Shown in pieces: positions 985 to 62,305 of a DNA stretch of 64,000 bases. Each line of letters begins with the position of its first letter. Position 1 is the stretch's first letter. Under the pieces are notes generated by a model. It was not told where the DNA came from and did not search any database. It worked only from the letters and a program-made list of their open reading frames with translations. The translations under genes and the position numbers were made by a program. The stretch is from Ophelia neglecta (Eukaryota), in the NCBI GenBank assembly GCA_965285935.1, contig CBDIWN010000008.1, positions 248,001 through 312,000 of the forward strand. Reading direction: 5' to 3'.

Positions 985-3115
985 CTACTTAAAGTTTCCA
1001 TACTGTTCGTTCCTTGTCATATATTCCATTGCAATACAATGTAAGAAACGATATTGATCCTGTTAAGAAATGGAAGCATTCACTTAAACTGTAACTGTAA
1101 TCTTTGAATGCATGCACAAGATAATTGATTAATAAATAGCCCACTATCTTTGGACATTAACATTAATGAAAATAGAACGACATTTTGATATTGTAGATTA
1201 GTGTATCAATTATAGAAAAGCAATGTTTGTCACAATTCCGAAAACTCTTACCGGCAATGCACATATTAGTTATAGTACTTACCAAAGTATTGACAAATTG
1301 TTGTCGGTGTAGGGAAACAACTCTGACAGCAAGAAAGACGTCCACCTCGCGGTCTTCTTTCATCTTCTCTAACATATAATGTGCTGCGCATATCATTCCA
1401 CTGTGGCTGGCACCGTCTCTGTAATATACAAGTTAGTAATGGCATGTTGATTAAGCCCGCGAGATGCTTTAAGGAGATTAATACTTACCTCTATCTCCTT
1501 AAGCCGTATGGAGAAACTAGGCGATGAGAGGTGAGATGAACGTTTAGAGGGACATATGAAAGCGCTAACAGCTGATTTATTAAACAGCCCCCCCCCCCCA
1601 CCAACCCCTTATTAAGCGTCAGTGTCTCACTAATAACGAACAAGAGTAGTGGTATATATGCTAAAAAGTGTGGAGCATCCTTCAATAATTCATATTTTGT
1701 ATGTCACTAAGATTTTACAAATTACAGCTGCCTATTTATAAATGGGTGTTTGGCAACAAACCCCTCATTCGCGCTTTTTTTGAATCCTAAAGAGAAGCAT
1801 TTGTCTAGAGAATAACATAAAGATGATCCTAGTTTATTCATGTGTTATTTGTGTTTTTTACGAAAAAAATTCACGTGTTTATAACTTACTTGCATTGGAT
1901 AACAATTTTTCCAGTTTCAGATTGTCGTTGCCACTTCTGTAGTCGTTCTAACAGATTTAAAGTGTCATCCATGTTTGGCAGATTCTGTTTATCTGGCCGT
2001 TGCTTGAACAAAATATGGCGGACGCTCACTGCCTTGTTCTGGAACTAAGAATTTAACCAATAATATTAAAATATCGTTGTTGTATTTGAGAATATGCTTT
2101 TCTATACATTTAATAGTTGACATATCAATATAAATAAAATAAAATCCAGAGACTAACACTTGATGAAAAAGACACGGTGAACTTTCTTTCTTCTATGGCA
2201 TCTTTTTCGTCTTCGTCTTTTGAATCGATGCGCACCTCAAGATCACCAAACTTCCTAACGTCACCTTGTTGAAATTCCCCGTAATTGGGACAACCCTGAT
2301 GATAGAAATTGATGATAAAAACAAGTTTGTATATTTTGACGGGTTTAAAATTGCCGACCTAACTTCTGGCTTTTCGTATTGCACTATTGGTTTTATTGAA
2401 ACACGGCCTCCTACCTCGGAGTTTGGGGACGTTGTGTCCACAGTTATCACAGTGTGGCAGTTTTGTTCATACACCAAACGCCAGAAGTCAACAACAGTAG
2501 CAGGGAGTGGCAGCTGTGTTGCAATGAATGTCTTCTCCGCAAGAAAACTCTAATAAATCGTGGAGTAAACGAAATGCATTCCATCAATATGTGGCTTTAA
2601 GTTCAAGAAAATTCGAAAAATACAAAAGAAAGAAAAAAATGTTATCAATTGAGCATCATCCAATAAATCACTATTAAAAGAACATGATTAACGGAAAATA
2701 TGTCTAGAAATATACCATGCGTTAATAATCATTCAGCAAAGTATAAGGGAGATTGATGATATGGTGAAAAAGCTGAATGTAAGTTGTATTCATTTAAACC
2801 AATACACACGTTGACCACAACGGCATTGATATAGTCATTGGTCCCCGGACATCTTGTAGATAGATACAACCTGTGTTTATTGTCTATTGAAGAAAACAAA
2901 AGAAAACAGTTGTTTGAGTTAACCAATCTGATTGTGCATTGGTTCCATATACAGACATATAAGATTAGTTATATTATCATAACCCATGCAGTGTCTATTA
3001 TCTTAAACTATGTACCTGGCACTATATCAGCATCTCGATTCTTCCGCCTGTTTTCCTTACTCAGAGCACTAAGTTTGTCATCTGACTCCTTGTGTTGTTT
3101 CATTTTGGAAAGAAT
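985..3115 (-). other. PTP domain D2 exons of copy 1 (degenerate pseudophosphatase)
   Basis: KNRD, DYINAV, FIATQLP and DFWRLVYE are present. WPD is replaced by RPD and the signature reads IQCKDGASHSG, lacking the essential Arg. Confidence 0.85.
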
Positions 3116-6100
3116 CTGAAATGTAAGTCATTCCATAATTATCAACGCCTCACAATGATACAAAAGGGCTACTTTTCAGATAGGCGGAGTATATGGAAGC
3201 AAAAACCAAACAAAACTGTTCACAGTGATCGAAAATGGCTAATGCCAAACTGACTTCATTATCGATTCCCTCTGTTAGCAAAGTAACGTAAATGGTGAGC
3301 ATGCCGTTTGTTGCTGTCATCATAGAAAGTGCCATATTGTTATAATTATAGTGTTTGCCATCATCTATAAACCACATGCGATTTTAACACTTTTGTTTAA
3401 CATATCACACATTATCATATTGGTTAATGAGTGTTTACATGAAAAAGATGCATGTCTTTAGATAATTAATACAAGATTACATCATTGGAATAAATAGTTT
3501 TTCACAACAAATATTAATAAACTAAAATAGTATCTATAAATTATTAATTGCTGAAATGGTGCAACAAAACCACTATGTATAAAATGCTTACTTTGAATTG
3601 TTCTTCGATGGGTATTTCGTTGGAATATTCGTTTCCGCCGACCAGTTGTGTGAACCTCTCAGGATACACGTTACATGGAATGGCCGTCTGTCCTTGCTGG
3701 TATGCATCTAACAGTGCCTCGTAGATAAATATATATTGTGGCTGAAAGCAGAAGAAATATAACTTAATATATCTATTGTGTAGGAGTCAGTAATAATTAG
3801 ATATGTAGACCAAATTGATAATTAATTATGAAAATTGAGTATCCTGATACAAGAGCCATCGTATGGAGATTTATAATATAACTATTTGCCTTTCCTCCTA
3901 AATATATATCAAAAGTAATGTTGAAATGTCACGAATGCACATAATTAATGAGGCGTTTAGGATAAGGCGTTGATAATCAAAGTTTAGTCGGCATATGGGT
4001 TTACAAACTCCACATCCGATTTTCTATAATCTTTGACCTTAGCTGAACAAGATAATCTTTTTGGTAAAAACAGAGTTCATGTAAAAGCTTAATATAGCCT
4101 TAATGGAGTATTATCTCACGAAAAATTCTTACCAATGTCTGAACCATTTCCATACGTTCATTTCTGAGCTGAGTTACCAGTTTGAAGACATCTACTTTTC
4201 CTTCTCTTTTCATTTGGTCCAGGAGATAGTCCAGCGCAATCAATGTCCCTGTGCGGCCTATTCCAGCACTGGGAGGGATAAAGGAAATATGCTCATGGTG
4301 ACATTATTGTACCTTGATAAATAAACTAGCATTATAATGCCTTAGAACATTGTAAGCTTCAAATATGTTACTTTACCTGCAATGCACAATAATTGGCCCT
4401 GTTCCCTCTCCGTCAAATGATCTCAGCTTTCGTCTGAATTGCAAAAGAGGGAATACGTGTTCTGGGGCCTCCTTGTCTGGCCAGGAGAGGAACTGCAGGT
4501 GCTTTACTGTCCTCCGTTCATTCTACAATATGCAAATCATGGATGGGTTTTCTTATTTTAATTCTAATTGTGTTGATCGACCTCAAACGCTGACATGCTC
4601 TCGTTAAGTGGCGCCACAAAACGAAACCTTGAAGGAATCGGAACATTTTAATTTTTTGTTTTAAATTTTTCAATCCAAGAAAAAATCAGACAAAAATAAT
4701 TGCACCATATCTGATTTTGCATTACTATATTACATAACTTAGCATAGACCAGGTTATATCAAGTAATTGAAGTTATTACAATTGAAAATCTGTGATCATG
4801 TTCTATAAATACAGAATTCGACCAGAAAAAAGCAGGTCATGATTTATCGATCACCTTGGTATTTAGTGTATGTGTATTGTCTTTCAACTGTCGGTCAGCT
4901 ATGAATTATATTTTACATGCCAGTTACCAGATTACATGTGTTGCACAAGCAGAAAGCAGTTATTCTCAATACAGGCATTTCGTTTCCAGATATTTAACAA
5001 AGTTAATCGAAAACGCAAACAGCTCCTCCCGCAAGAGTTGAATAGTACGTCAAATGTGTAACAAAGATTCTGCGTGTCGATGAAGTATTTGTGACACAAG
5101 CCTGCCCTAGTTATCAGGTATATTTAGTAGATAAATATCGGTTTGTTATACACTATGGTGATGAAATTTTAGATGAAGCATTTGACAGTTGCTTTACGTT
5201 GCGAAAGCTGTCATAACCAAGTGACTTAATGTGCTGCCAACCTGCTGGAATAGGCAGTTAAACAACAACAACAACAACACACAGCGTTATGGTATGAACT
5301 ATGTGACATGTGGTAATCTAGATGTATAAATGTAGAAACGAAAATAAGAAAAATGCGAGTGGAAAGCCGGCAGACAAAGCCAAGTCACTAGTTGAGAACA
5401 GTCCGTTAAATCGTTACGAAATCATCAGGCACTAGCAGCCGAGTCGAGGCAGCAACAATTAAAATTAAGAAACGCACAAACACACTTCCTGACATATTTA
5501 ATAAGCAAAATATGCTTTAAAGACCTTCACTCATTTCTGTCTTATACTGGTTAAAAGTATTATATGTACCAACATGCAGTTCACAATATGATATAACTAA
5601 GAGGAAATGTTGTTCACGTGTTTCTTAACGTGTTTCGTTACATTCTGCGATTTTTCGTAGTTATTAATCTTCTAATCAATACGGGCCATACCACAATGTA
5701 TAGAAGAATGAATAATTTCCTTTCACTTAGGGCCAAATGTATCATATGAAATTTAAGATAACTGTAAAGAAAAATCTTACCCCTTTCCGTATTGTGATGA
5801 GTGTCAGAGTGTAGTCGGCATATGAATCACAGGCCGTGGTAGTCACTGTAATATCATCATAGGTTACAACCTCACCAACTGCCTCGGGCCAATACTGGGC
5901 ACACTTTGTCTGTTTTGAATAAGACAAATGTCAATTGTCAATGCTTAAGAAGACACGCTCTAATGACACTCAATACGTCACAAAAAAACAAAAACAATAC
6001 AATTCAACAATATATTTTATTTGGTTCACACTGACAAACCTTGGTGAGTTCTTTTATTCGTGTTGCCATAACAATACGATTTGACTCTAACTGCCAGACC

Positions 6101-9100
6101 ATCGACCAGAACGCGTACACTGTGTGCGGTTTCGGTCCTGAAAAGAAACAATTAGAAAAAGTTAATAATCGTTTGCTAGATGATAGAGTTCTTTTTCTTA
6201 ATCTTACTTAGTTGCTATTTAGATTTTTAAAGACATCATTATTATAAGTACTTATAGTATTGTTTCTGTTTCAATGTTCGAATAATTTCTGATTTAATTA
6301 TAAACCGACCTATAACTTCGTGAAACCGTAATTGTTTTTGTGACATATAATCCATGTCCGAATACCTATATGCGTTTGTGCGAGTTTTGTTTACTCACCT
6401 TGTGTGGCCACGTAATGGTTTTTCTTATTAGGATAACCCTAAAAAAGATACGTCACTTCGACTGTGCTTTAGATTATAAATGACTTTACGGTTTGAGATA
6501 TATCAAAAACCGGTAACATGTGGGTATATATACCAACCTTCAGTAAAACCATTTCAATATAGTAATCATATTTACCGTTATGAAGCTGGCATTGATGTAG
6601 TCAGAGTTATCAATAGTAGTTTCCAGAACCACTCGAGAAAAGTCGTCTATAAAAATGTAACTCATCATGTAACATATGAATAAAATACTGTAAATTAATA
6701 TCTTTTAGCAAACTGCAAACTTTCGCAAATTTGTATATAAACGCGAAAATATCAACTAGCAAAAATTTCCTGTTTGCGATTCCCTTACGCAACCCTTCTT
6801 TTAAGCAGTAATCAGGCTCTATCGTCGCCCAGCCAGGTCGGTAATGCAGGGTGAAATATGACTCGGGAAATTTTCTGGTTCCCTTAGACACCTTGTTTCT
6901 TAGTATACTTTTGCTGTCATTGAGTACATTTTACCATTTTACGTTCTCAGACGTGCGTTTTTAAATATGTAGGTTATAATCAAAGAAAACATACAGGCCC
7001 TGATATTCTTGAATCGATCCCTAGCTATGTTTTGTGTCTGCTTGGCCACGTCACATGGGCTCAGTTCTCCTGTAGGCACGTCCTACAACAACAGATAAAA
7101 TTATTAATGGAAAAAAAGCATGAAAAGAAATATGAAAACAGGACAAACAACTGGGACGCGTCTGTATGATAAACGAGAGAACACAAATCATATATCATAG
7201 CAGCGATGCAAAATTAGGTAGCTGGAAAGAACCAATATGTTTTTAATTCGGACCACCCAACTTTAAGTTATCACAATCGGCGATCGTCTTAAAATGAAGG
7301 GAAAGAATATTGGTACATTATCTTATTTTAGTTTCAAATACTGCGCAGTAATTAATAAAGATCTATTTTCGTGGCTAATGTTGGTTTCTTTACAGCCGCC
7401 AACATATAAAGCATAAATGACCATTTATTGAATCCCGCAGTGTATATACAATGAACGTTTTCGGTATACCGTGTATGCATGAACCATTTTTTCTTCAATA
7501 CGCATGTGTGACCCAATTAGTCAATGCCACAACTGTGGTAGGTCTAAAAAATGCAGCGGGATAAGACACCAAGGTTGCTTACACGGTGGATCAACCGATG
7601 TCATGAACTGTTTGAAGTTTAATTACAACATAAAGAAAGTAATAGATACATCAATTCCAAAGGATAAACATAAAGGACGCCTAATTTACTCAATGTCTTA
7701 ATTGGAATTAAATGAAGCATAACTCGTAACTTATTGTACCATCATGATCAATGCGACCGGCTTTATTATAGATATTTAATGTAGTTGTTATAGAGTTTTG
7801 AAATTACGAAAATGTGACCTAATGTAGATAGCTTTGTCAGTTAAGTCATTTTATTAGAAAATCTTCATAAAACACAACTTAAATAGGCAGTACTTGTGCA
7901 TGACATAACCAAAATGACAAACATGACATTTTTAGTCGACCTACGTAAGAGCCAGATTTAGGGTGACATGCTAGGCGGGCACAATTTAACTTGAAAATGT
8001 TCTTTCGTAACGCGGTTATAAAATACCAGGTTGGCGATACGTATGTTTGACACTTCCCGGGTTTAAGCACGCATGCCCTCACAAAGTACCCCAGCATGCA
8101 GCGCGGTCTTCCGCTTCACGCCAGATGCCACAAATATCAATAATCGCTCGAGCATACGCGATAGTAATAATCATGGACATTTTGGAGAATGTATATATCT
8201 AATCTAAGGAACTAGTCCAGAAGGCTTAATTCAATACCACACACTTTACTTAAGAATGTCATCACATTATCGATACATCTTAATTATGTTTGAAAATTAG
8301 TTATGCTGCCAAAGGCCTTTTTGTATTCTAGAAATGCAGATACCTTCAATTCAAAAAAAGAAGAAAAAACTTCACTGGCTGGTTACTAACTTCAAATTCC
8401 CTTTTCAGACCATCCTTAGTGTATTTCCGTGCCCCAATATATACTTCTAGATCATCTTCTTTAACACAGGTTCCATCGTCATGATTTTTTGTAGCTGGGA
8501 AGTCATAGTATATCGTATTAGGGTTCTCATCTACGTTACCTCCAAAGCATGGATTGTCTACTTCCTGCGTTTCAGCGAGTTCATTGACAGGTCCTTTGGC
8601 ATGGTAAAAAAGAACATTAGTCGCATACTGTCCATAGCACCTGACATGCTTTCTAAAAATGACACTATACAGGGGAGCGAGTATTTGAATAGATATGATT
8701 CCATGTGGAAAAAACGGGAGAAGGTACCCGGCACACAAAACAATATCATTTATCAAGAAAAGTCCATCAATTTGGCCCGGTACAATCAGGAACCGAAAGC
8801 CATAGGCATGGAATTACTTACCGGAACGCCTTCTAAATGACGAATAGCTTCTTCCATTTGGAGGTATTTCCTCCATTTTAGCATTAGCATTATCTTTCGC
8901 TTTCGTGCGTCGTTTCCTATTATGAATTTTCAAACACATCGTTTTGATTGAGGAACGTGAGTAGCGCTCGTAAGGATTTTTATTACTCATTAATGACAAC
9001 TAAGCAGACTCAATGATAATGCTTACAAAAATCATAATGGGATATAATGCCTCTGAGAAGTTGATAATTTCTTCATTCACCAACCTAAGAAAAACGGCAA

Positions 9101-12100
9101 GAACTACCACCAGGATGGCTATAGTCAGGAACGCTGCTATTGATCCTGTAATAGGACCGATCAAGCCTAACGAGACAGAGGGACCGACGCTAGGTTCTGG
9201 AAGATTGCACAATTACGTGAAATGGTCATTGGATAAGCAGCTGTAATGGTGTTGTTTGCATCCGAAGCACAATAAATAGATAGTATAGAGCATAGGCATA
9301 TAAAGGCAATGTCACTGTTTTGCGGGCCACGAATTCCCAAGTTAAAAAAAACTGTAGCTGTTGTAGTAAATATTACTTATGGCGACAACAAATATGAAAT
9401 TATATGTGACAAGGCAATATTATCGACTTTTTTTATATTGACAGCAAAATAGTTGAGTTTGATACTGAATTTAAAGTCAAAACCTTGTTCCTGTGTACCT
9501 AATGTAGTAGCGAAGACAGTCATGTTTTTGAGACAGTCTTCTTTTATTCCGTTCAATTGTCGATAAATCTTTAATATGATCCGGTATGTAGAATTGACGG
9601 CCAGATTTGTAAATGTTTTGTCATATTTCAAGGCAATATTATCTTCTTTGATTTCTATTGTAAGCGATTCAATGTCTACCCCATTTTCCTCTGAAACGGC
9701 GATTTTGTAGCCAAATACAGCCGCCGTATTTAATGTAATGCCTTTCACATGTGTCCATTCAATGGTTATCCTGTCAGTTTGAATATTGATAATGCTGACT
9801 TTGTTTATGTCCGGATACTCAACATAGGCTGTTCATAAAAAAGCAATAAGATAATTATTTTTCATTAATACATAAACATTATTGTGATTACGTCATTAGA
9901 GAAATATTGATCAAAATTATGTCTCAGTTCCATTTTTACTGATTATACTTACCTATAGATTGGTTACAGTAATCTCCAGAGTACCATGTATCGTACGGTG
10001 GTAGCTGACAACCGTTACTACATGCTCCACTGTACTGATGACAAGTCGTTATGTTATCTACAGCCTCACAGTTACTACTACATGGATGATCGCAGGTTTT
10101 ACCATAAAAACCACCTTGACAGACGCACGCCCCGCTATACCTGTCACATCCGGGGTTACTATGCTCACTAGAACACTGATTATTACAGGTATTATTGCAG
10201 AATTCGCCATAAGAACCGTCGTTACAGCCAAAATTACAAATTCCACTCCGCTCGTTGCAAGACCCAGAGCTAGTGACTACATGACAACCAGTGCTACAGT
10301 TGTTTTGACACTGGTCTCCAAAGTAAGGGTCCTGACAGCCACTCGTGCAACGCCCATCAGTGACAGTACATGACCGATTAGACTCCTGATCAATAAGGCA
10401 ATTCGCACTACACTGGTAGTTACAGTTTATACCGAAATGGTTTTTGTCACATTCTGTAACGTAGATTATAATCATAGACTGGCGGGATTTCTGGAAAATG
10501 GCCCTGTATAAGGTTCTAGAGGCATTTTGGGGTACAAGTTGGGAACCAGACTTTTTAACATAATTTAAGCATGCTGAATCCGATAAACCCGGTTCCCAAG
10601 CGAAATTTTGAGTTTTTGACCATCTAATTTGCATAAACAAAATGGCGGTCAAATTGTCAATTTTTAACTTTTCTTGAATCGTATTATATGGTTACGCTGT
10701 AACCAGACAAGTAAAAAGGACAAACAAAGTGTCTATACTACTTTATTAAAGGTCATAACATACATTTCAGACATTTCTAAAGCAATTAGTGCTAAATAAT
10801 ATTCATAAATATGCAAATTAGTTGCCGCCATTACAGAACCATCAATTTTCTCCGATATCTGGGGGGATTGCGTAGGCCTACACCTGCGTACGTCATAACT
10901 GACGTCATTGCGTATGCAGCGCCATAGCTGTCGTCATTTCTAGTTACTCCAACTAGATAGCCGATTGATAACGGATTGTCTTAATGCTGTTTTGCTATCG
11001 CAGTTTGATTTAAGGCTGTTTAGTGTGAGTGAAACTCCATTCACTTTTATACCTATCAAACAGTTTTGTGCTTTTCTTTGCTTTCCTTGTCTTGTCTGTA
11101 ATTTTCTCTTTCTTATGTTCTCTTCATTATTTGACATTGACTCTTTAGTGTAAGTGAAACTCCATTCACTCCCTTCTTGCACAGCGGTATTGCTATCATT
11201 TCGTGGTGGGGGGATTGCGTAGGCCTACACCAGAGTTTCGTCTTCTGTGAATGATGGATCCAGTAGTTACCTTGAAGAGGTCATCACCTGTAGATTGCAG
11301 CCTGTGTATTTTCTGCCAAACTCCTTCAGTCGGTGGTATTCTGAGTAAAGCAAGTGACCATGGACTCGCAACAGCCAAGCATGCTGCCAGTATCAGAAGA
11401 AAACTCAGGGACTCTAAGAACATCGTTGTGATCGACCGTCTTGAGAATGTTTTGAATTCTGATGAAAAACAATCTATTGTTTGGCACAAAATGTGCTATG
11501 CTCATTTCACGGACAAAAGTAAAATTGAACGTTTGCAGAAGCCACAGGCAGTGGATTCTAAACAAGTAGGAGCCAGTTGCAGCAGTAGTGGGAATAGACA
11601 TTCATTGCGAAAGTGTGTGGAACCAGTAAATTGGAAGCTATGCATTTTCTGTCAAACTGTTTCGAAGGCACGATTGACATCAGTCATGACAAAACAACTG
11701 AGTGATCAGATCATTCAAGCTTCCTCTCTCGACTACAAAATTGGTCTTCGATTGGCTGGAGTGATTGACTTAATTGCGGCTGAAGCCAAATACCACTTGA
11801 CCTGTCTCCGTTTATTCACGAGATCTACCAATAAAAATAACCAGGACTCGCAAAACTACGTCAGCCCTATGTAGATGGACTCTTTCATATAATCTGAGGT
11901 CTCACATTGCAGATGAAACGTATGCCATGTACAATCACTGTCGTGGCAGTACACGTGTTCACAATGAAGCTACCAAATCACGACAAAAGCGGGACAACGA
12001 TGATGAGATGTCATTGCTCACGGCTTTTATGGGATTTGGAGTTTTTGCGTCAGTTTCGCCAGATTCCCTGCAAAATCTCGTCACAAAAGACCTAGCAACA

Positions 12101-15100
12101 GAAGAGATCCAACACTCGTTACTGTGTGCCAAGGAACTGGGACAAGAACAAGTTAACACATTCGTTGCAGACAGAATGATTGTGCCTGAAGAAGGTAACA
12201 AACCAGATGTCACAATCCATGCGTCCTTACAACGGAATAATGCAAAAACATTTGCATCTCTGTATGATGTGGTCAAAGACAGTAAAGCCAAAGAGACCAA
12301 AATCATCTTCAAGGCAGATAGAAACGTCTTACAACGCCTTGTAACCGCTTATGAAGCAGGTCGTCCTGTTGACTTGCCAGCTGTCCTAAAGCACGAGCTT
12401 CTGCCAGTTCCTATATCCATTGCCGAGATGAACGGTGCGCTCCGGACCGGAAATAAATCCGTACTGCTAGAGAAGTTGACTGAAGACATAACTTGCCCTG
12501 AAGCTATTGAACTTCACGACACGTCATCTTGCCTCATTATTGATGGACAGGCACTAGTGGTTTCTTTGGGAAGGCCTGATAATGCCGTGACCTTTGGGGA
12601 TTTGGCCGATACATACGTAAGAGCAGTATTGAGGGCAGGTTATAAGTATCAACGGATAGACATCGTATTTGACAGATACAGAAAAGAGACAATCAAGGGT
12701 GGTACCAGAACACGACGCACAAAATTAGCTCGACCAATCAGACGGCCTGTGGAAAGTCGTGATGTGCCTCTTCCAAAGAACTGGACAAACTTCCTGTCGC
12801 TTCCTGATAATAAAGCGGATCTTGCACATTTCCTGTCAGAGGAACTGTGCATTCAGGCACCTGATGATAAGGAGATTGTAGTTGCCGGGGGATTCCGAGA
12901 TGAACTCGCAGTGAGGTCGTCAAAGACATGCACCGATTTGGCTCAATTGAAAGCCACACACGAAGAAGCAGACACTAGATTGGTGTTACATGCTGTGCAC
13001 AGCCAGTTCAATACAGTTGTTGTGTCATCAAGGGACACTGATGTTCTTGTGCTTTTGGTTTCTCACTTCCCCCGTGTACAATGTGAACACCTCTGGATGT
13101 TATCCGGTACCAGCAAGAAACGGCAATATATACCCATTGATGCGGTTTTCAATAACCTACCAACAGATTCAGCACCACATCTGTTGCCATTTCATGCATT
13201 AACCGGATGCGACTCCACATCCTACTTTGCAAATCACACAAAAAGGTCCTCATGGAAAATGTTCATAGAGCACCATCATTTACTCAACAACTTGGGAATC
13301 GGTGACCTCACAGAGGAGACCATTCTATCGTCAGAAAAGTTTGTCTGCAGAATATATGGTGTGCACAAAACAGACTCGGTTGATGCAGCAAGACATGTAC
13401 TGTTCTCCAAAACTGGAAAACCAGAAGCATTGTCCCCGACGAGTGATGCTCTCCGCTTCCATTTGATGCGTGTACACTACCAAACAATGGTTTGGAGAAA
13501 TGCTCACTGTGGTGTACCTGAGCTTCCGGCGCCTGTAAATATGGGATGGAAACATGGAGATTCAGGTCTACAGCCGATACTGATGTCATTGAGCCCAATC
13601 CCCGGAAGTTGCCTGGAAATGATTTCGTGTGCATGCCAGAAGCAATGCAAGACACGTCATTGCAAATGTCGCAAGTCTGGGCTACGTTGCACAGCAATGT
13701 GTGCATGTCACCAACAGATTGATGACCAAACTCCCTATTGTATGAACACTGACTAGCAACACTTATTCAACCAGACGAAAGGATTTCGAGGATTTTAACT
13801 GAGGATATTTTGCGTGAGGATATTGTGATTTGCGACTACTAATTTGCATATTTATGAGTGTTGTGTACACCTAATTACTTTAGATCTTAATTGCTTTTAT
13901 AATTTTCTTTAACCATCAAAACATAGGTATAGACACTTCATTCGTTATGTTTGGTCGCCTATTTACACAGATATCTGAGAAACTTGTTGGTTCTGTAATG
14001 GCGGCAACTAATTTGCATATTTATGAATATTATTTAGCACTAATTGCTTTAGAAATGTCTGAAATGTATGTTATGACCTTTAATAAAGTAGTATAGACAC
14101 TTTGTTTGTCCTTTTTACTTGTCTGGTTACAGCGTAACCATATAATACGATTCAAGAAAAGTAAAAAATTGACAATTTGACCGCCATTTTGTTTATGCAA
14201 ATTAGATGGTCAAAAACTAAAAATTTCGCTTGGAAACCGGGTTTATCGGATTCAGCATTCTTAAATTATGTTAAAAAGTCTGGTTCCCAACTTGTACCCC
14301 AAAATGCCCCTAAAATGTACATTTTCCAGAAATCCCACTAGTCTATCAGTAAGTGAACATTTGTATTGGTTTACCTTGAAACTGGATGTTACTGCTAAGA
14401 CATTGTGTATTATATAATCTGCAGTGAAAAGTGAAATGATTTTTTTAAGGTTAAATCAGTAATGGGCCTACCTTGGCAGTCCGGGTACTTTGGGTAGTTC
14501 TTGTCGCATAAACCGCAGCCAATAACGGGATCGCACGACTTGCATCGGTTTATATCACACACTAGAATAGCAGGTGAATAGTTAATCAAACGGTTTGTAA
14601 TGGGGCTTATCTTTATAAACAACTTTAGTTAATCCCATTTACCCGTTTTGACACTTAATTGTCGACCATTGCCAGAATAAAACCGAAGTAGTTACATTGG
14701 GTAGAATTCATGTTCAGGTGTGCGTTTGCATTTGTTTAACATAATCTATTATCTAAATATTGATAATATGTCACGGCGTTACTCTCAGAGGTGCCAACAA
14801 GGTGTGGAAATGTATCCCGTATGCAGCCACTATCTATTCGAAATAGACATAATCTATTCCGGTTTTAACATACCAATAGGGATGTATGCGTGAACTATCA
14901 CCTCACACAGGCCAAGGTACTGGACTTCATACCCGTCTGTATTTCTGATAATGGTGACGTATCTGCCGCTGAGGGGCGAGTCACAATTTATTGTGTCGCT
15001 TTCTGCTTCGGGAACGACTCCTGTATAATTCTTACAGAGACTTGTTAAATCACCGTCTGTCTCGAAACCAACTCCAAGGCGAAAATTACCGGTACGATCT

Positions 15101-19764: not shown

Positions 19765-19967
19765 CAGTGGCGGATCCAGGATTTCAGGAAAGGGGGGGGG
19801 CAACATTTTCCAAGGCTGATAAGGCAAATGTCTGGATTGTCCCCGTTACCAGCCCTCTGAAAGCACCTTGCGTGGATCCATATATAGGCTCTGATCCAGG
19901 CCCACTTTTTGCCAAAAAGGGGGCCCGGGCCCCCTGCACCGCCCCCCACCCCCACCCCCCGCCACTG
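19765..19967. mobile_element. Short non-autonomous TIR element (CAGTGGCGG...CCGCCACTG)
   Basis: 9-bp terminal inverted repeat with a G/C-run interior. ACATA flanks both sides. Paralogous copies are at ~34937-35118 and ~62951-63125. Confidence 0.55.
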
Positions 19968-22430: not shown

Positions 22431-22469
22431 AGAACGATCCTTGAATATTAATCCTCGACTAGCAGTTTG

Positions 22470-33800: not shown

Positions 33801-34179
33801 TGCCCTGATAATAATGTTTGACAAGCAATGTGCCGACGTGTACAGGTCGTCTTTGTCTTGTGTCACGATTTTGGTGGTAACTTGTGAACATATAAAGTTG
33901 ACACCACGACGGCAACTGATTTTAAAAGCATTCGTGACCAAAAAAGTCACAAGTGTGCTTCAGATGTTTTCTTTCCATAATAATCACTTTTTAACTTTAC
34001 GGGTTAACAATAAGTTAAACAACTAGGAATACTCAATACTGCCGCGGCCAACAATCCGGCGATCGAGTAATACCAATAAGTTCATAAAAAGAACATATCT
34101 ACTAACCTGTCTGAGCAGTAACTCTTGTAAGGAAAACACTTGAACTGACCAGCAAACAAATGTAAATGTTAGGAGACAT
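24855..34179 (-). CDS. F-type lectin/EGF/FN3 single-pass receptor with short tyrosine-motif (ITAM/NPxY) tail (copy 2; 10 exons, ~650 aa, intact)
   Basis: Exons: 34179-34107 (signal peptide), 30215-30063, 29174-28959, 28218-27994, 27647-27558, 27413-26910, 26798-26454, 25893-25773 (TM GALTGIVIGIVAIVATVATVIGCLIV), 25527-25397, 24949-24855 (stop). All GT-AG with consistent phases, 1953 nt open. Tail: ...EYNVYEKPSPEHAGYANLTEEGNPMYEQLNTNNDYEEIDQQEGAKR. Confidence 0.88.
30559..32591 (+). mobile_element. 5'-truncated CR1/L2-group LINE in intron 1 of copy 2
   Basis: RT motifs YRPVSVLPLFSKILE, QFGFR, AFD, GIPQGSILG, LFADET and WLEVNKLSLN, spread over three broken ORFs (30557-32229). 3' end is AATAAA followed by TTCAA repeats. 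The empty site in copy 1 (~17417-17435, gcacgcat|aaaaacagaaat) shows no TSD. Confidence 0.88.
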
Positions 34180-40560: not shown

Positions 40561-40584
40561 GCAGTCAAGCCTCCAATAACCAGA

Positions 40585-41860: not shown

Positions 41861-41862
41861 TA

Positions 41863-44900: not shown

Positions 44901-45071
44901 CCTCTAATGCAAAAGTGCAAACTATTCCAAAAAATCTTCAATTCAATACAAACAGCTATAACCATGCTAACCATTTAAATGATATCGTTTTATTGTTGAT
45001 TCTCCAATGTCTGATTTCGGATGTTGGTCCACGTATCAAAAAAAAGCATTTATTTTCAGTTTCTTTCAGAA

Positions 45072-48242: not shown

Positions 48243-48396
48243 NNNNNNNNNNNNNNNNNNNNNNNNNNNNNNNNNNNNNNNNNNNNNNNNNNNNNNNNNN
48301 NNNNNNNNNNNNNNNNNNNNNNNNNNNNNNNNNNNNNNNNNNNNNNNNNNNNNNNNNNNNNNNNNNNNNNNNNNNNNNNNNNNNNNNNNNNNNNNN
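48243..48396. other. Assembly gap (154 N)
   Basis: Run of N. Confidence 1.
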
Positions 48397-54021: not shown

Positions 54022-57000
54022 TTATCTCTTGGCGCTCTCTTGCTGATCTATATCCTCATAATCATTATTTGTATTTAGTTGTTCGTACATTGGATTTCCC
54101 TCCTCAGTCAGATTAGCTGTAAAACATAATAAAACATTACTAAATCCACACTTCATACTTACATAAACAAGGACAGTTAAAGGGAACAAATTTTCAACTG
54201 AATATCTAATAATAACGCCCATATTGCAATTTTAAGAACCGCCAAGGATATTTATACTTTTGGGAGAAGAAAGACACACGTTTAGCCCATATTTCAAATC
54301 ACCTATAAGACGATACGAAAGTGTTGTTTAATGTGATAACAGGACATTTGTCGTACACATGCAATTCACAGGTTGTCAACACAATTATATTATGGTATAA
54401 GGGTATTAACTAAGTCTTGTATTTCCTCAATATTTCACATGATAAGAACATCATGTGTGTTAAATATGTGCTTATTTGATTTAACAACGATTAGCAGTAG
54501 ATCGAAGGAGAAAACCAGATTATTAAACCAAAGCTAATATGTGTTTTTAGCTCTCACCATAGCCGACAGGTTCCGGGGACGGTTTCTCATATACGTTGCA
54601 GTCAGACAATTCAACTTCCGGTGTGGCAGGAACCTGGTTTGCATTTTGTTGCGATAATTCGTTCGTTAAAAGTTTCACCTGTCGTACCCTGTATATAAGA
54701 AAACACAAGATCTGAGAATGCATAAGGAGTATTAGAGCAAATATTTGCACCCAACACTACAGCCAATCACTACATACCTATCTATCATATCTAATATATC
54801 TACTAGTCTGGACGTAGAGACATTAGGACAAAGGTAAACAAATGTTCGAATATTGTTTTAAATAAGAAAGGAATTAGCCAAATTGCCTTAAGGAAAGTAA
54901 CAAGAAATCTTCCATTTTAGACGTCACTTACTTGACTATGAGACAACCAATGACGCTGGCTACAGTGACAATTATTGCAACAATTGCTAGAACGATTCCT
55001 GCCATGCGCCCGGTGACAGAGACGTAGTTTGCCTTGGTTTATGGAGATTAGCTATATTTGAAATTATATCACGTCAAATAATTATCCATTTACATTTCTT
55101 CAAATCTCCCCGGACATGTATTGACACATATATTCCTGCTTGTAATGTAATTTTCCTACCAAATACTTGCATACTGTATAAATACTAGCGTCAAATATGA
55201 ATGCCCTTAATATACCTGCTGGTAAGCTGATATCAAATACAAGCGCGGGGCTACTCTGCTCCAATATACCCTACATTGTAGGCTACAAAGGGACTTTTAC
55301 ATCATCAAAGATATTCTACTGTAGGCCCATTATTGCCCGATGACATATTTTCAAAGCATTGATTGAACTATATTCAAGATCAAAAGAAATAATTTGATTC
55401 ACATTAATGTCATAAATCAATACCTATATTTATAGGAAAGACAGTTGATTAAGTAACTATACTTCAGACACCCCTTCTTATAAAATCATTATCCAGAGAC
55501 AATGCAACGTATAGTATAGATTGGCAATAAGGGAAATGCTGTGCTTTTTTCGAGACTAGCAGCCAAGATAATTAGTTTAATAATTCCACCAAATTCTAAC
55601 CTTGATTTTGTTCAGCCAAAGTAGTGGCAAAGACTGTCGAGGATTTGCGGGAGTCTTCCCTTATTCCATTCAATTGTCGATAAATTTTTAATACAATCCG
55701 ATATGTGCAATTGGCGGATAGACCTGTTGAAGTTTGACTATATTTCATGGAAGTATTATCTTCTCTGATTGCCATTGTAAACGATTTATTATTTTTCCCA
55801 TTTCCGCCCGAAGTAGTGATTTTGTAGCCAAATACAGCTGCTGTATTTATTGGAATAGCCTTCACGTGTGGCCATTCAATGGTTATCCTGTCAGTTTGAA
55901 CATTGGTAATGCTGACGTTGTTTATGCTCGGATACTCAACATAGGCTGTCCAAAAAAATGCAATCAGATAATATATTTTTCATTTATATTTAAGCATTAT
56001 TGTGATTACTTTTATATGAAATGAAATATTGATCAAAATTATGTCTCAGTGCAATAAAACTGATTTGACTTACCTATAGAATGGTTACAATGGTCTCCAG
56101 CGTACCATGTATCGTACGGTGGTAATTGACAACCGTTACTACATGCTCCACTGTACTGATGACAAGTCGTTATGTTATCTACAACCTCACAGTTACTACT
56201 ACATGGTTGGTCACAGGTTTTGCCATAATAACCACTGTGACAGACGCACGCCCCGCTATATCTGTCACACCCGGGGTTACCTTGCTCACCAAGACACTGA
56301 TTATTACAGGTTTTATTGCAGTATTCGCCATAAGAACCGTCGTAACACCCATAATTACAAATTCCACTCCACTGGTTGCAAGATCCAGAGATTAATTGGT
56401 TGAGCGGCTTACAGCCCGAGCTGCACTCTGTTTCACAAAATGCTCCCCACCTGGCCCCCAGGAGCCCTTAGAGCATGTTCCGTTGTTCCTCGCACAAACC
56501 GATGTCCCATTAACACCATTACAGTGTGTACTGCAGGTTTTATCACATGTCTTTGAGTAGAAACCGTTACGACAACCATTATTACAATCTCCTGTTTCTC
56601 TGTGGCAAACGTTGGAACCAGTGACTACATGACAACCATTGCTACATGTGTTCTGACACTGGTCTCCAATGTAAGGGTCCTGACAGCCACTCGTGCAACG
56701 CCCATCATTGACAGAACATGACCGAGCATTAGACTCCTGATCAATAAGGCAATTCGCGCTACATCGCTCGTTACAATTGATACCGAAATGGTCTATATCA
56801 CATTCTGTAACGTAGATTATAGTCAGTAAGTGAAGGTTTGTTACGGCTTACCTTGAAACTGGATGTTACTGCTCAGACATTGTGTATCATGTTATCTTCG
56901 GTGAATAGTGGCATGATTTGTTAAAGGTTAAAACAGTAATGAGCCTACCTTGGCAGTCCGGGTACTTTGGGTAGTTCCAGGGGCATAAACCACAGCCAAT

Positions 57001-60000
57001 AATGGGATCGCATGACTGGCATCGAATTCTATCACACACTAGAATAACATGTGAATAGTTAACACAAATAAATAGTGATCTTTTGGGCCTTTTCTTTTAA
57101 CACAACTTTCCTAAATCCCGATTAATCGCTTGCACTCTTAATTGTGTTCCTGGGCAAGCCTTAGATCGAAGTAACTATAGTGGGTTGACGTCAAGTTCAG
57201 GAGTGATTTTGCATTTGTTTAGCACCATCTATTATCTGACTATTGATATATTAAGTTAGGGCATAACTTTCAATAGTGCCAACAAGGTGTGGATGCGTTT
57301 GTAAAAGTATGCTTTATGAAGCCACTATCTTTTTAAAATGGCCACAGTCCAATTCCGGGGTATGCGTTCAAAGATGGAAATGAGTGCGGGTTTTAACATA
57401 CCGATAGGTTTGTATCCGTGAACTATCACCTGACACAGAGCAAGGTACTGGACTTGATACCCGCCTGCATTTCTGATAATGGTGACGTATCTGCCACTGA
57501 GGGGTGAGTCACAATATATTATGTCGCTTCCTGCTTTAGGAACGGCATCTGTATAATTCTTACAGAGATTTGTTGAATCACCGTCTGTCCCGATACCAAC
57601 TCCAAGGCGAAAATTACCGGTACGCTCTGTAAAAAGGTATTCCTGAATACAAATACATTGTCTCCAATGACACATTGTCCTCAGAGCGACTTAGTTACGT
57701 CTATTATGTTTTGATCCTAAAATATATTAGATATCTAAGTAGCACTACTAGCACTGGAAGTCTATTGGTCAATAGTATACACATAAAATACAATCTGGAG
57801 TTTAATTTTTTCCCAAGTGAACAGCTGGCGAGAGAAGAAAACAATCGCGTATTAGTAATGATGTGATTAATGCTACCATCATGCGTAGATGTTTCAGGTA
57901 GATGTTTCATATTTGTCTCTAGATCTACCAGTAATTTTTCATTTTCTTACTGTAAGATGGATAATGCTGTCTGTTTAAGATGGTGACACTAACAACTGTG
58001 TAGATATCATCTAGATCGACGTACCACCAGGCTCTCTCCCCAGATCCAGCAGCAGGATGTGCACAATAAGCTATCCATGTAGACTTGTTACCATCGACGG
58101 CCAGGTCAGCGGCTTTCCTTTCGCTATATTACCTGTTTATACAAAATACTGATAAAACAGTCTGGTCTACTATGCTGTATTTAATCATAGAATGACCTAT
58201 TTAGTAAACCACAAGGGCGAACAGAAAATTTACGGGTAAATAAAAATACTTTACCGGCAAATGGATAAAACGATCCTCGTAATCATATGATAATGCAAAA
58301 CAAGAAGTTCGAAAGCATCATATTGAACCCGATGCATATTATACAAGCATTTCTCTGGTAGGGCATAAATATTTATTTACATTTCACGTCGCGTCTGACT
58401 CTTGATGAGAAGGGAAGAGGTTGAGGCGTTATTGGTTCGGCTAGGGATCGGAAAAAAGTGCACGATGCATGCAAACATTGTTTTACACATGTAGACCTGC
58501 CCCCTTCCTGCATTATAGATTTTTACAACTCTATATAACATACTATAGTAATATCACAGTCCTAGTCATAACAATCCTATTTCTCACGTAAACAGAGCCC
58601 TACACGGCCCGCTAAATTATAAGGCCAGCGCCATGATATATTATATCATGGCACCAACCCTACAATCCACGAGCCATGCATAAAACTTACTGACACATAA
58701 AACTAATGAAATACGACATTCTTTATTTTATAAGAACTTTCCACCGCGTAAATAGCTATCTTGTTTTAGGACTTTCCATGACCCGGTTATGATAATGTTT
58801 TACTTTTGCGTCATCTATCATGGATTGATTCTGATTTCTAGTCATAGCAAGATATACGGTAAGTTCCGAGTCAGGTCATAGACGTTCACACGTCCTATGG
58901 ACTCGTTTGGCAACACGTATACCCTCATGATACCAGCGGTTATAAGGACTCTCCTTTACATGTATGTGTAATGTTTTAAGTGGAGCATGGTGATCAAGTG
59001 TCGTTTCTAAAGTAATATCATAAGCCTTTCTTTATAATTTGCTTTCGGTTTTTCCATATCTATATTCATGTGCACAGAAAAGTGAGCAGACATTGGGCAA
59101 TACACCATTTAGTCCTGGACAAAGTCACCATTCGTTCTTGTTATGTATATCAGAATTGACGAGGAGCGGTAGATTCGTTAAGTCGAATCACCGGGGCGCG
59201 ACAGGTTATTCGATCTGCAAGAATCTATCGCTCCGAATCAATTGTCCGACTTAAAATATTGCATACCATGTCAAGGGTGACGGCCACGAATCCACATTGT
59301 GACCTGTATTTCCGAAAGGCAGCAAAACGGAAATCATCATGTAGTAGATTCGTGCATTGCAGTATGCACGAATCTACTGGTGATAGTGTACTGTGGATAG
59401 TAGAATCTTGCTTCCGAATCTACTGCATGAACAATGGTGTAACGTCACAACAACATTTTAATATAAGGTCTAATATCTGGAATTTGTCATGTTTTGGACT
59501 TGTAAGGGGTCGTTTACGGTCAAGTGTATTGAGCAAATGCGAGAACCTTGTAACATTGCTATTATCTAAGCTATTAAGGTGAATATTAATAGCTCCCATG
59601 AGCAGAGTATTTCATTTCCATAGGACCAAGATATCTATAAATGTTTTAAACTCGTCTAAAACAAGTGGAAAACTTGATACATTCTTTTCGGATGGAGGTG
59701 GTCAATAGACTATAATGATTCTAATCCTATATGAAATGTGCTTGATACTAAAATAAAGACATTCAAATGATACAAAAATAATGCTTCAACTTCTGAATAT
59801 AAAACTATGAATAACGTGAAAAAAAATTTCACAAACTGTAAACAACTCAAACATAAAAGATTATCATAATTAAAACATATTAAAAGGGAAATGTGATAAA
59901 TTATGCAATACAAGTTTGCCAGGCTTAGATTCAATAACCAAATAAATTTTATTTCACTCTTGATGTTATATGCCATACTGAAGGAAACAATCAAAGACAT

Positions 60001-62305
60001 GACTACCGAAGCCTACCGTCGATGATGCTAAATTATTCGGAGAATGGTTCCATACTTTGAGTAGTTGTAAGACAGGGAACAGTTCTGATATATTACTCTC
60101 AAATTATTTTGTGTGCTTAGAGTTAGACTCGCTTAGGTTATGATTGAATAAATAGGAGCCGTAATTGTATTCATAAATTCGCATATGCAATGGCAATATT
60201 ATTTATTCTTTTCAACATTGTCATAGGCGTTCTGATATTTCATACTATATTAATTAAATATTGCACAAAGAAATTGATTATATTTTGACTATTCATGATA
60301 AATGTACGTCATATTTTTCAAATGAGAATTATGGAGTGTTCATGCCTACACAAATAAGAACCTGAGAGGTTTGCTTGATCTAGCGATAGTGTGCCTCAGG
60401 TGTCTGTTTGTTAAAAGAATGCGGGAAATGACATGATGGTTAAATGAAAATTGTTAAGTACACAGTATAACATTTTTAAAGAAACTCTATGGTTGATATT
60501 TTTTAATGCTTCCAAATAAATACAAACAGAAAGTTTTACCGAGTTTACACCCAGGCCCTTCTCTCCGTATGATAGCAGGGTCATCCCATTTACATTCACC
60601 TCCATTGATACAATCTCCTGTCGTCTGATCACAGCCATTGGTACAGTGACAGGGAAATACACAGCCAGCAGCATTCCCAAACCTACACAGACCTGAGGGA
60701 AAAAATTCAAGGGGAACATTTGAATGTAGGACATGGTGTTAGACAAAACTATGAAGCAAATTGGTATCCCTGAACATTTTATTTGGGCAACACGGGTTTC
60801 TCTGACCAGCAAAAGTTTGCTCCCAAAAGTCGGGCCGAAAAAGCAAAACTTACATAAAACGAGGAGTGTGTGGGACAAAACACATTAAACGTAATCTGCG
60901 AAACATAAACCTTCTTGTGTAGAAGAATACATCGAATATTTATAATCATTCATATCGGTAATATATTTTGACGCGACAGCGTTGAAGTGCTACTAACGTT
61001 GTGTGCGTGTGACGAGCGTCCTTTTGTTAGCTGAAATATCCGAGAGCACCAACTTTCTTGTAATTCCGTGGAAAGTCAGGTATTTCAATTTTTATCGAAT
61101 AATTTTACCCTGAAACACGCTGTCAGCGAGATTTTCTTCGAAGGGCAACACAGAGCTATTTCCCCGCCCCAGGAATATTGTCCTTCCTCAGGCCTCCAAA
61201 CCTCATATCGGTGAATTTGATAATAGCGTTTAATCAGTAAAAACTATTTATCTTGTCTTATTTCATTTCCAAGCGTCACAAGCACCATACTAGCTTTAGT
61301 ACTTGTAACAGTATTTGTATTTTTATCCCTTTTGTGCCTCGGTCAATGCGGCAAACGCTATTATTTTGCGGCAAAAGCAATGTCAGTGATGCATTTGGTA
61401 CTATGGTGTAGTAAAATATACTACACCTGGCAAATATAAAGGTTGTGCGAGCCCCCTGGCGGGAGCCTAGGTCTTCCGACCCCCCCTTGTGGATCTAGAG
61501 GTTGTCAGAGCCACCACGACACATTTTGCACCAAAGTGGTCATACAACATGATGAATATCAAAAATTCTAACGGAGACATTCCATAGATCCCGATAGCGT
61601 TATCAGCTTTTGAAATACAAACGCTCCTTTTTAGGGCGTGACACTTATACCAGTCTTTCATGAGTTCTGGCCCCATCCCCCACAACCACCCCAAACCGCC
61701 GCGCCGTTTTCAATTAGTGGGAAGCATCCGCCCCTGGTTACGAATCAGTTCTACAACACACTGGTGTACATACGATATTAATATTAATGTATGACTTTAT
61801 GTTCCAAGGGTGGTGATAGGAAAATTGAATGTGTAATTCATTGAACGGGCACCTCAATATGTTATTAGTGGCATTGGCGGTGTTGCAAATTAATTAATGC
61901 CCTGATAATAATGTTTGGCTAGCAATATGTCAAGGTTTGTAAGTCTTTTTAGACGTGAACAGATAGTCCTTGTCTAGGGTCACGATTTTGGTTGTGACCT
62001 GTGGAAATGAAAAGTTGACACCACGTCCACGACTGATTTTAAAAGCATTCGTGATCAAAAAAGTCATAAGTGTGCTTCAGATGTTTTCTGACTCTATTTT
62101 CATAATAATCACTGTTTAACTTTACGGGTTAACAATAAGTAAAAACAACTATGAATACTTAATACTGCCGCGGCCAACAACCCGGCGATCGAGTCATACT
62201 AATAAGTTCATATAAAGAATATATCTACTAACCTGTCTGAGCGGTAACTCTTGTAAGAAAAACACTTGAACTGACCAGCAAACAAATGTAAATGGTAGAA
62301 GACAT
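54022..62305 (-). pseudogene. Copy 3 of the lectin/EGF/FN3 receptor with ITAM-type tail, disabled by three frameshifts
   Basis: Exons: 62305-62233, 60692-60540, 58132-57951 (182 nt vs 216, a 34-bp deletion, stop at 58071-58073), 57626-57402, 57038-56949, 56804-56074 (731 nt, 1-bp deletion at ~56462, two extra EGF repeats), 55945-55601, 55051-54932 (120 nt vs 121, 1-bp deletion in TM exon), 54688-54558, 54116-54022. Confidence 0.85.

Follow-up and report, generated by a model that had tools for sequence, protein, structure and literature searches.

F-type lectin receptors with either a tandem tyrosine phosphatase or a predicted ITAM-type tail in a clustered gene family of Ophelia neglecta

Introduction

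Paired receptors such as KIR, Ly49, Siglec-5/14, PIR/LILR and CEACAM are a hallmark of vertebrate innate immunity. Here we describe two neighboring genes, A and B, in a 64,000-nt stretch of the Ophelia neglecta genome (hereafter the window; G000:C16:248001-312000, carried by contig C16) which attach one type of F-type lectin ectodomain to two different cytoplasmic modules: a tandem protein tyrosine phosphatase (PTP) in gene A, and in gene B a short tail that fits the consensus of the immunoreceptor tyrosine-based activation motif (ITAM). All coordinates are window positions unless a contig is named. An earlier note on this DNA had proposed that the two genes form an activating/inhibitory pair. 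One ectodomain type, two cytoplasmic modules and adjacent genes were indeed found; they do not make a simple pair, the window taking in one section of a family that numbers at least 150 genes, and "inhibitory" is an assumption. The best explanation we can offer, a tentative one that may well be wrong, is that one type of glycan ligand is read by both ITAM-type and phosphatase receptors, with the phosphatase version setting the threshold.

CED-1, Draper, MEGF10 and Jedi-1 are reported to carry atypical EGF arrays and a tail with NPxY and ITAM/YxxL motifs, to have phosphotyrosine-binding (PTB) adaptors and Syk/Shark kinases as readers, and to be gated by receptor phosphatases (PMC6219719; PMC8092387). 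Draper-type ITAM signaling is set off by excluding a bulky receptor phosphatase, as for the T-cell receptor (PMC6219719). The Alr family of Hydractinia consists of clustered type I receptors with pseudogenes, whose tails with ITAMs or ITIMs (ITIM being the immunoreceptor tyrosine-based inhibitory motif) have been proposed to balance activation and inhibition (PMC9546547), and the fester family of Botryllus is reported to comprise non-vertebrate recognition receptors with ITAM/ITIM tails (PMC12582321). A full-text literature search returned no description of an F-type-lectin receptor phosphatase, of a receptor protein tyrosine phosphatase (RPTP) with an ectodomain of F-type lectin and EGF array, or of a family of phosphatase/ITAM twins.

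Two neighboring receptor genes with different cytoplasmic modules

Exon models were made by reading conserved open segments together with their flanks and sorting AG/GT sites by phase, and the Pfam, PDB and genome searches each used one exon as query. Motif scans place the coding sense of genes A, B and a third copy, C, on the minus strand. Seven ectodomain exons occur three times in the window with GT-AG borders, every one in phase 1; the three tandem genes of the earlier note are confirmed to this extent, while copy C proves to be broken. Genes A and B lie about 5.8 kb apart on one unbroken stretch of sequence.

Gene A (19030..985) has 25 exons, the joined frame of which is open for 1227 aa, and all of its introns are GT-AG; position 985 is the final base of its stop codon. 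It encodes, in order, a signal peptide, an EGF module, an F-type lectin, a Cys-rich module, an EGF array, a fibronectin type III domain (FN3), a transmembrane (TM) segment, a first PTP domain (D1) and a degenerate second one (D2), from the following exons:

18958-19030, minus strand: exon 1, start codon (ATG at 19030) and signal peptide; hydrophobic leader, GT donor in phase 1
16929-17081, minus strand: exon 2, Cys-rich EGF-like module; AG/GT borders, phase 1-1, kept in B and C
15835-16050, minus strand: exon 3, first half of the F-type lectin; Pfam F5_F8_type_C / F5_F8_type_C_2, B counterpart matches structures 3cqo and 1k12
14874-15098, minus strand: exon 4, second half of the F-type lectin; B counterpart matches 3cqo residues 105-147 and 1k12 residues 110-155
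14472-14561, minus strand: exon 5, short Cys-rich module, placed by its splice sites
9953-10453, minus strand: exon 6, MEGF/laminin-type EGF repeat array, recognized by its Cys pattern
9484-9828, minus strand: exon 7, FN3; Pfam fn3 E 2.9e-4, under the curated cut-off; alternative in-phase donor at 9499
9085-9196, minus strand: exon 8, TM segment with basic residues behind it (hydrophobic span and RKRR)
8916-8822 and 8593-8391, minus strand: exons 9-10, juxtamembrane, in the phosphatase type only; 64 paralogous copies in the genome
3592-7082, minus strand: exons 11-18, PTP D1 (8 exons); Pfam Y_phosphatase pieces, PDB matches and motifs
985-3115, minus strand: exons 19-25, PTP D2 (7 exons), with the stop codon ending at 985; Pfam Y_phosphatase pieces

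With a leader, a single hydrophobic span followed by RKRR, and cytoplasmic D1 and D2 domains, gene A has the makeup of a classical RPTP. The continuation of this copy into a TM segment and both phosphatase domains, as previously claimed, is borne out by the open frame and by collinear Pfam Y_phosphatase pieces, which cover profile positions 10-37, 48-81, 80-124, 130-176 and 177-222 in D1 and 41-75, 131-177 and 177-222 in D2. The catalytic motifs of D1 are present (VHC/SAGIGRTG over the junction of exons 16 and 17, SWPDK, and QTL/PQYIF) and are likewise kept in the phosphatase-type paralogs g3, g4, g8 and g12. In the D2 domain of gene A the Cys is retained, the signature Arg is replaced by His, and WPD reads RPD. 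The signature Arg of D2 is retained in g3 and g4 (CKDGASR/CKDGAIR; G000:C16:55000-57000 and 42800-44800) and is His in A, g8 and g12; judging by these residues, D2 may potentially still be active in the g3/g4 subfamily.

Gene B (34179..24855) is modeled with 10 exons, intact borders and an open frame of 650 aa. Its ectodomain exons match those of gene A one-to-one at 84-85% aa identity, which falls short of the near-identical ectodomains, as in vertebrate pairs, that had been suggested. Its exons are:

34107-34179, minus strand: exon 1, signal peptide, mapped from A
30215-30063, minus strand: exon 2, EGF, mapped from A, AG/GT borders
29174-28959 and 28218-27994, minus strand: exons 3-4, lectin, mapped from A, AG/GT borders
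27647-27558, minus strand: exon 5, Cys-rich, mapped from A, AG/GT borders
27413-26910, minus strand: exon 6, EGF array, mapped from A, AG/GT borders
26798-26454, minus strand: exon 7, FN3, mapped from A, AG/GT borders
25773-25893, minus strand: exon 8, a TM exon unlike that of A, with a membrane span that has no charged residue
25397-25527, minus strand: exon 9, first part of the tail, with YEKP and ending at the first ITAM tyrosine
24855-24949, minus strand: exon 10, second part of the tail, (A)NLTEEGNPMYEQLNTNNDYEEI... and then a stop; about 96 matches in the genome

The TM exons of A and B both run from phase 1 to phase 2 and are alike in length, but they resemble each other too weakly in sequence for homology to be claimed.

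The ITAM-type tail and its conservation

The cytoplasmic part of gene B comprises 75 residues, KVRQVKLFTNELSQQNPDQVPATQEVELSEYNVYEKPSPEHAGY followed by ANLTEEGNPMYEQLNTNNDYEEIDQQEGAKR, with the tyrosine motifs YEKP, YANL-x7-YEQL (including NPMY) and YEEI. Copies 2 and 3 had both been credited with this second kind of TM exon and tail; for copy 2, which is gene B, the frame is open and the motifs listed are present, while copy 3, which is copy C, is frame-broken. Located 3' of the TM segment, YANL-TEEGNPM-YEQL satisfies the ITAM consensus Yxx(L/I)-x6-8(12)-Yxx(L/I), where "ITAM" denotes a fit to the consensus and the function is predicted. The last full codon of exon 9 encodes the first tyrosine, and the next residue, Ala, comes from the codon split by the intron, so that the ITAM of gene B needs the modeled splice between exons 9 and 10.

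The fit to the ITAM consensus, already pointed out in the earlier note, is kept in the paralogs. Both tail exons were found for 27 paralogs, with tail identities reaching as low as about 60%, and the GT and AG of the last tail intron are kept in 27/27, with the split codon encoding A in 24 and V in 3. All 27 have the first ITAM tyrosine, with Asn at +2 and Leu at +3. The second ITAM tyrosine is kept in 26 of the 27 (its +3 residue being L in 23 and F in 4), and the YExI motif keeps its Tyr in 26/27 and its Ile in 27/27. The motifs of the family may be written as YE(K/E)P, YANL-x7-YEQL and YE(E/D)I; their spacing is constant over all 27 tails, and the last eight residues vary freely. NPxY, which overlaps YEQL, has its Asn in 21/27 (replaced in 6) and its Pro in 26/27. 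The ratio of nonsynonymous to synonymous change (omega) in the tails is 0.3-0.5 at a synonymous divergence (dS) of 0.4-0.8.

YEEI is the classical optimal Src-SH2 motif, and PTP-epsilon and PTP-alpha are known to activate Src-family kinases. The best PDB matches of the D1 catalytic exon are PTPRE and PTPRA, then LAR, in a comparison of one 45-residue exon that cannot assign a subfamily. Nearness to PTP-epsilon and PTP-alpha among solved structures, together with a tail-end YEEI/YEDI kept in 26/27 tails, favors a cooperating pair, in which the phosphatase version, like CD45 or PTP-alpha and brought to the same ligand as its twin, would take off the C-terminal phosphate that inhibits Src-family kinases and so prime the phosphorylation of the tail, the two versions making up a positive signaling unit. 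We consider such cooperation improbable, both because of the limit on subfamily assignment and because a membrane phosphatase beside an ITAM is expected to dephosphorylate that ITAM, the principle that underlies kinetic segregation (PMC6219719).

Elsewhere in the genome, in a tandem cluster at G000:C2:96400000-96664000, about ten genes have a pair of SH2 matches each, spaced by 2-2.5 kb. An intronless open reading frame (ORF) of 695 aa at G000:C8:29348807-29350027 (minus strand) encodes an SH2 and then a tyrosine-kinase domain, which makes it a candidate for a cytoplasmic tyrosine kinase. A tandem-SH2 family that had expanded would be well suited to read an ITAM family that had done so too.

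The F-type lectin head

The assignment of the ectodomain to the F-type lectin fold, made in the earlier note, is sound on the basis of structure matches. The first lectin exon of gene B matches FBP32 (3cqo, E 3.7e-10) and eel agglutinin AAA (1k12, E 1.4e-5), these being the best matches, and also bacterial F-type lectin modules in the PDB; the second matches 3cqo at E 9.3e-7, and both exons are collinear with F-type lectin structures. The domain may bind fucosylated glycans. The fucose-binding motif is H-x26-R-x-D-x4-(R/K). The triad His and first Arg of the lectin domain align to AAA with a His-Arg spacing of 28, which is +2 over the motif; the x-D position reads DH in B and AH in A, and the last basic position, which falls on a split codon, is K in B and N, then R, in A. 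Between A and B the lectin domain has an omega of 1.16, from small counts. A Pfam scan gave no match for the EGF-like and EGF-array exons and no EMI domain.

Exchange of ectodomain sequence between the two types

Exon trees, synonymous divergence and intron similarity show that ectodomain sequence has been exchanged between neighboring genes of the two types, with a boundary in the intron that follows the FN3 exon. The family trees draw on 13-15 genes taken from C16:1-200000 and the window. In each of the lectin, FN3 and EGF-array trees, phosphatase-type and tail-type genes stand mixed, in two separate clades. Gene A is sister to gene B in the FN3 tree (89/87) and in the tree of EGF array and FN3 together (Shimodaira-Hasegawa-like approximate likelihood ratio test, SH-aLRT, 96). 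The earlier note had proposed that the ectodomain and intracellular exons be traced separately, and within this genome their histories do differ: the EGF array of A groups with B and g2, both of the tail type (support 100), apart from g8, and the phosphatase of A groups with g8 and g12 (support 100). Monophyly of the phosphatase type is rejected on the ectodomain (delta log likelihood 229.8, approximately unbiased (AU) test p 2.4e-30) with four phosphatase-type genes constrained, a group that was named after earlier trees had been inspected. At least three changes of type are needed on ten genes.

In the first lineage, dS is 0.093 between the ectodomains of A and B, 0.146 between the phosphatases of A and g8, and 0.319 between the ectodomains of A and g8. 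The same order holds in a second lineage, with 0.219 between the ectodomains of g4 (phosphatase type) and g6 (ITAM type), 0.46 between the phosphatases of A and g4, and 0.84 between their ectodomains. The similarity of A and B takes in introns, at 89-94% DNA identity, and fades about 47 nt past the FN3 exon. It follows from this order of dS values and from the similarity of introns that ectodomain sequence moved between the types after the phosphatase genes had diverged. Such exchange leaves the two versions with similar ligand-binding parts while the signaling modules evolve separately under purifying selection; omega is 0.22-0.25 for the phosphatase, as against 0.3-0.9 for the ectodomain.

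The sharing of parts may also have come about without any functional coupling, through tandem duplication and exon shuffling by way of a phase-1 cassette, so that the mixing of types would be a by-product of unequal crossing-over in a dense array and would not have been selected. The tail type would then consist of Draper/MEGF10-like engulfment or adhesion receptors and the phosphatase type of ordinary receptor phosphatases. We regard this as somewhat unlikely. In its favor, the ectodomain exons are all phase 1-1, which favors shuffling; the genes stand densely and interleaved in an array that also shows recent segmental duplications, a gene fragment, a pseudogene and the relic of a tail; and the ectodomains of A and B are near-neutral relative to each other (omega 0.64-0.88). 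An NPxY that overlaps YxxL and accompanies an EGF array also recalls Draper, with its tail of ITAM and NPxY (PMC6219719). It sits less well with the finding, in two separate lineages, that the ectodomain shared between a phosphatase-type and an ITAM-type gene is younger than that shared between phosphatase-type genes, or with a conversion tract that stops just before the output-defining exons. The Asn of NPxY, moreover, is replaced in 6/27 tails while the YxxL residues are nearly invariant, and the Pfam scan yielded neither an EMI domain nor an EGF match.

A large clustered gene family

Genes A and B, copy C and a relic of two tail exons are members of a family of type I receptors that is large and lineage-specific. 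At least 150 copies of the second lectin exon (from 313 candidates) occur in the genome, along with 64 of the phosphatase-type juxtamembrane exon and about 96 matches to the last tail exon, which amounts to 64 phosphatase-type and about 90 tail-type genes. Family sites lie on C16, C7 (87-93.6 Mb), C5 (16.5-19 Mb) and C2 (112.4 Mb), with the two types interleaved on C16 and C7. Within C16:1-200000, twelve further genes were annotated, all on the minus strand and with phosphatase and tail types interleaved, in addition to a 5' fragment gene. A 24.5-kb tandem segmental duplication at G000:C16:135300-188000 includes the 5' half of a phosphatase-type gene and a whole, near-identical tail-type gene; the duplicated phosphatase-type fragment is without the FN3, TM and phosphatase exons.

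A full-library HMMER search with the FN3 exon of gene B returned 9 matches, one of which is a true relative (P0001, 203 aa, 42% identity). Its source is a Logan contig of run ERR14113986, 1340 nt of genomic DNA from another organism, which stops before the tail. The contig has the same exon order of EGF array, FN3 and TM, with 56% and 42% aa identity to A and B, and since it comes from another organism the family is not restricted to this species.

Three sequencing runs of one sample cover exons and introns alike over 24700-30300, with no intron-sized joints at the modeled splice sites, and are therefore DNA. In these runs (X1-X3), exons in the same interval have a summed contig depth several-fold that of introns, with short contigs of 100-300 nt, which fits a multicopy family in which near-identical paralogous exons collapse in a short-read assembly.

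A pseudogene, a tail relic and the integrity of the assembly

Copy C (62305..54022) has all ten tail-type exons, three of them broken, and is most likely a pseudogene, as read from its frames; position 62305 is the A of its ATG. The exons of copy C and the neighboring tail relic and gap are:

62305-62233, minus strand: signal peptide
60692-60540, minus strand: EGF
58132-57951 and 57626-57402, minus strand: lectin
57038-56949, minus strand: Cys-rich
56804-56074, minus strand: EGF array
55945-55601, minus strand: FN3
55051-54932, minus strand: TM
54688-54558 and 54116-54022, minus strand: tail
52086-51956 and 51509-51416, minus strand: relic of two tail exons alone, with 1 nt lost in the second exon
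48243-48396, no strand: assembly gap, intergenic, between the 5' end of B (34179) and the tail relic

The first lectin exon of copy C is missing 34 nt and reads into a stop. Its EGF-array exon is of a long form like those of g4 and g6, and is out of frame, with one nucleotide missing from a stretch of five G, besides a Cys-to-Ser change; the TM exon is 1 nt short. The single-base losses could be assembly errors, an origin that is unlikely for the 34-nt deletion. The tail relic sits in a 2.3-kb internal duplication (49815-52103 and 52278-54705).

The gap, the single run of N in the window, is flanked by unique sequence and lies clear of the exons and introns of all copies; what hinges on it is solely how copy C is linked to, and spaced from, A and B. 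Misassembled haplotypes, which the earlier note had named as a possible source of the copies, are ruled out by a DNA divergence of 6-25% among the copies and by the unlike 3' halves of A and B. No other site in the genome is more than 85% similar to the second lectin exon of B.

The signs of decay in copy C, the tail relic and the 5' fragment gene raise the question whether the array is largely non-functional, with A and B as unexpressed or decaying members of a birth-and-death family whose open frames reflect recent origin. An omega near 1 between A and B in the lectin domain, a transposon 20 nt from an acceptor in gene A (described below) and a run index that yields only DNA runs and no RNA run agree with this. 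It is nevertheless very improbable, in our view: the 25 exons of A and the 10 of B have frames and splice sites that are all intact, the phosphatase (omega 0.22-0.25) and the tail (0.3-0.5 at the dS given above) are constrained, tail motif residues are kept while their neighbors vary, and the catalytic motifs are present in 5/5 phosphatase-type genes examined.

Mobile elements and other features of the window

The window is 62% A+T. Its self-comparison gives three long direct repeats (9437-19923, 26401-35391 and 55598-63621) and a second repeated block located downstream of the last two of them, at 22980-27226 and 52168-56390, part of which occurs again at 49815-52161. Other features are:

10474-14346, no strand: DNA transposon in intron 5 of gene A, absent from B; inverted ends of 388 bp with 94.6% identity
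20369-22423, minus strand: LINE-type (long interspersed nuclear element) reverse-transcriptase fragment between genes A and B; Pfam RVT_1, E 6.6e-15
30557-31159, plus strand: second reverse-transcriptase fragment (Pfam RVT_1), within a 2-kb insertion in the first intron of B; the insertion is absent from A
38754-39171: satellite between B and C, 3.5 copies of a 121-bp unit
39176-40559: neighboring satellite, about 42 copies of a 32-bp unit
45021-46420, plus strand: two adjoining ORFs (126 and 371 aa) between B and C, rich in ankyrin repeats

The 3.9-kb transposon in intron 5 carries a 609-aa ORF (11927-13756, plus strand) without a Pfam match and is bordered by a target duplication of about 5 bp (CTGAT/ATGAT). 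It lengthens intron 5 to 4018 nt, as compared with 144 nt in B, and one end lies 20 nt upstream of the exon-6 acceptor of A; the duplicated target keeps a possible branch site beside that acceptor. The ankyrin-repeat ORFs, on the strand opposite to the receptors, may be an unrelated gene or a fragment of one.

Discussion

In the reading that we tentatively prefer, both versions of the receptor would bind the same or similar glycan ligands. Clustering of the ligand would lead a Src-type kinase to phosphorylate the tail, and the phosphorylated tail could then recruit SH2 or PTB proteins, such as a Syk/Shark-type kinase, Grb2/Drk or a CED-6-type adaptor. The same ligand would draw the phosphatase version into the contact instead of leaving it outside, and there it would dephosphorylate the tail or its kinases, and so set a threshold. 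Since the same ligand would bring the phosphatase form in, this would be the reverse of the exclusion described for Draper and the T-cell receptor. The size of the family, its clustering and its fast-evolving lectin part suggest recognition of non-self or cell-surface glycans. A stronger version, which we find distinctly doubtful, holds that every local ectodomain type is held by ongoing exchange in two forms, one with its own ITAM and one with its own phosphatase, so that one ligand would bring kinase substrate and phosphatase together in a single contact, giving a self-contained activating/inhibitory system which would have arisen independently of vertebrate paired receptors and would invert kinetic segregation.

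Several observations weigh against a shared ligand read by opposing receptors. The phosphatase arm may help and not oppose the tail, because the nearest solved enzymes, PTP-epsilon and PTP-alpha, are Src activators, and the phosphotyrosine-recognition loop KNRY of D1 is replaced by RDRF in A and g8 and by RNRF in g3 and g4, Phe taking the place of its Tyr. On the side of the tail, the Asn that invariably stands two residues after the first tyrosine would suit Grb2-type YxN binding as well as an ITAM; four paralogs have YEQF, the second tyrosine is lost in one, and some C-terminal motifs read S/TxYxxI, which resembles an ITIM or an immunoreceptor tyrosine-based switch motif (ITSM). Scans of the genome for the SH2 and tyrosine-kinase families found SH2-kinase candidates and singled out no Syk/Shark gene. 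The fucose-binding triad appears to be kept only in part, with its spacing of +2 and a third basic residue that is K in B and N in A. Nor does every exon make genes A and B each other's nearest relatives, the second lectin exon of B being nearer to other genes. The paralog counts may be inflated, because some matches on C16 and C7 score identically, as in a partly duplicated assembly. A search of the run index returned only three DNA runs for the organism and no RNA run; transcription, the splice between exons 9 and 10, and co-expression are what we infer.

If functional, these receptors would indicate that opposing-output pairs arise convergently from quite different parts. Here a built-in enzyme would supply the logic of the inhibitory side, behind a lectin ectodomain shared with the ITAM-bearing twin. 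A phosphatase recruited by ligand instead of excluded would provide a natural test of kinetic-segregation models, and, for the making of synthetic receptors with a self-set threshold, a natural blueprint. The family would also be a candidate glycan-based system of non-self or surface recognition in lophotrochozoans, whose immune receptors are poorly known.

Comparison with known systems

The receptors described here resemble those of several systems in part. Both of their lectin exons align collinearly with F-type lectins such as eel AAA (1k12) and striped bass FBP32 (3cqo), with the triad His and first Arg present; unlike these secreted proteins, they are predicted to be membrane-anchored and to signal, two more residues separate the His from the Arg, and as third basic residue B has K where A has N. 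Gene A shares with classical tandem RPTPs (PTPRA/E, LAR, CD45) a signal peptide, a single TM segment, an active-type D1 (CX5R, WPD and Q loop) and a degenerate D2, and differs from them in having RDRF/RNRF for KNRY and at least 64 paralogs in one genome.

With CED-1, Draper, MEGF10 and Jedi-1, gene B has in common a type I topology, an EGF-type array and a tail with NPxY plus ITAM/YxxL. It departs from them in its F-type lectin head and FN3 domain, in the absence of an EMI domain from the Pfam matches, in a tail of only 75 aa, in an NPxY that overlaps the second ITAM tyrosine (21/27), in a family of tens of members, and in the existence of a phosphatase-bearing twin form. Alr and fester are likewise large clustered families of non-vertebrate type I receptors with pseudogenes and tyrosine-motif tails; their ectodomains are Ig-type or other and their inhibitory side is an ITIM, and no covalently attached phosphatase twin is reported for them (PMC9546547; PMC12582321).

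The likeness to vertebrate paired receptors extends to adjacent, clustered genes with related ectodomains, differing tyrosine-phosphorylation outputs, pseudogenes and rapid turnover, and to an ectodomain similarity that is renewed by conversion or recombination while the signaling parts are kept apart. The components differ: the ectodomain here is built of F-type lectin, EGF and FN3 modules, whereas theirs is of Ig or C-type lectin domains, the ectodomains are about 84-85% identical, and the paired function is a predicted one. Gene B carries its own ITAM behind a TM segment without a charged residue for adaptor pairing, and gene A, which has no ITIM, is itself a tandem tyrosine phosphatase.

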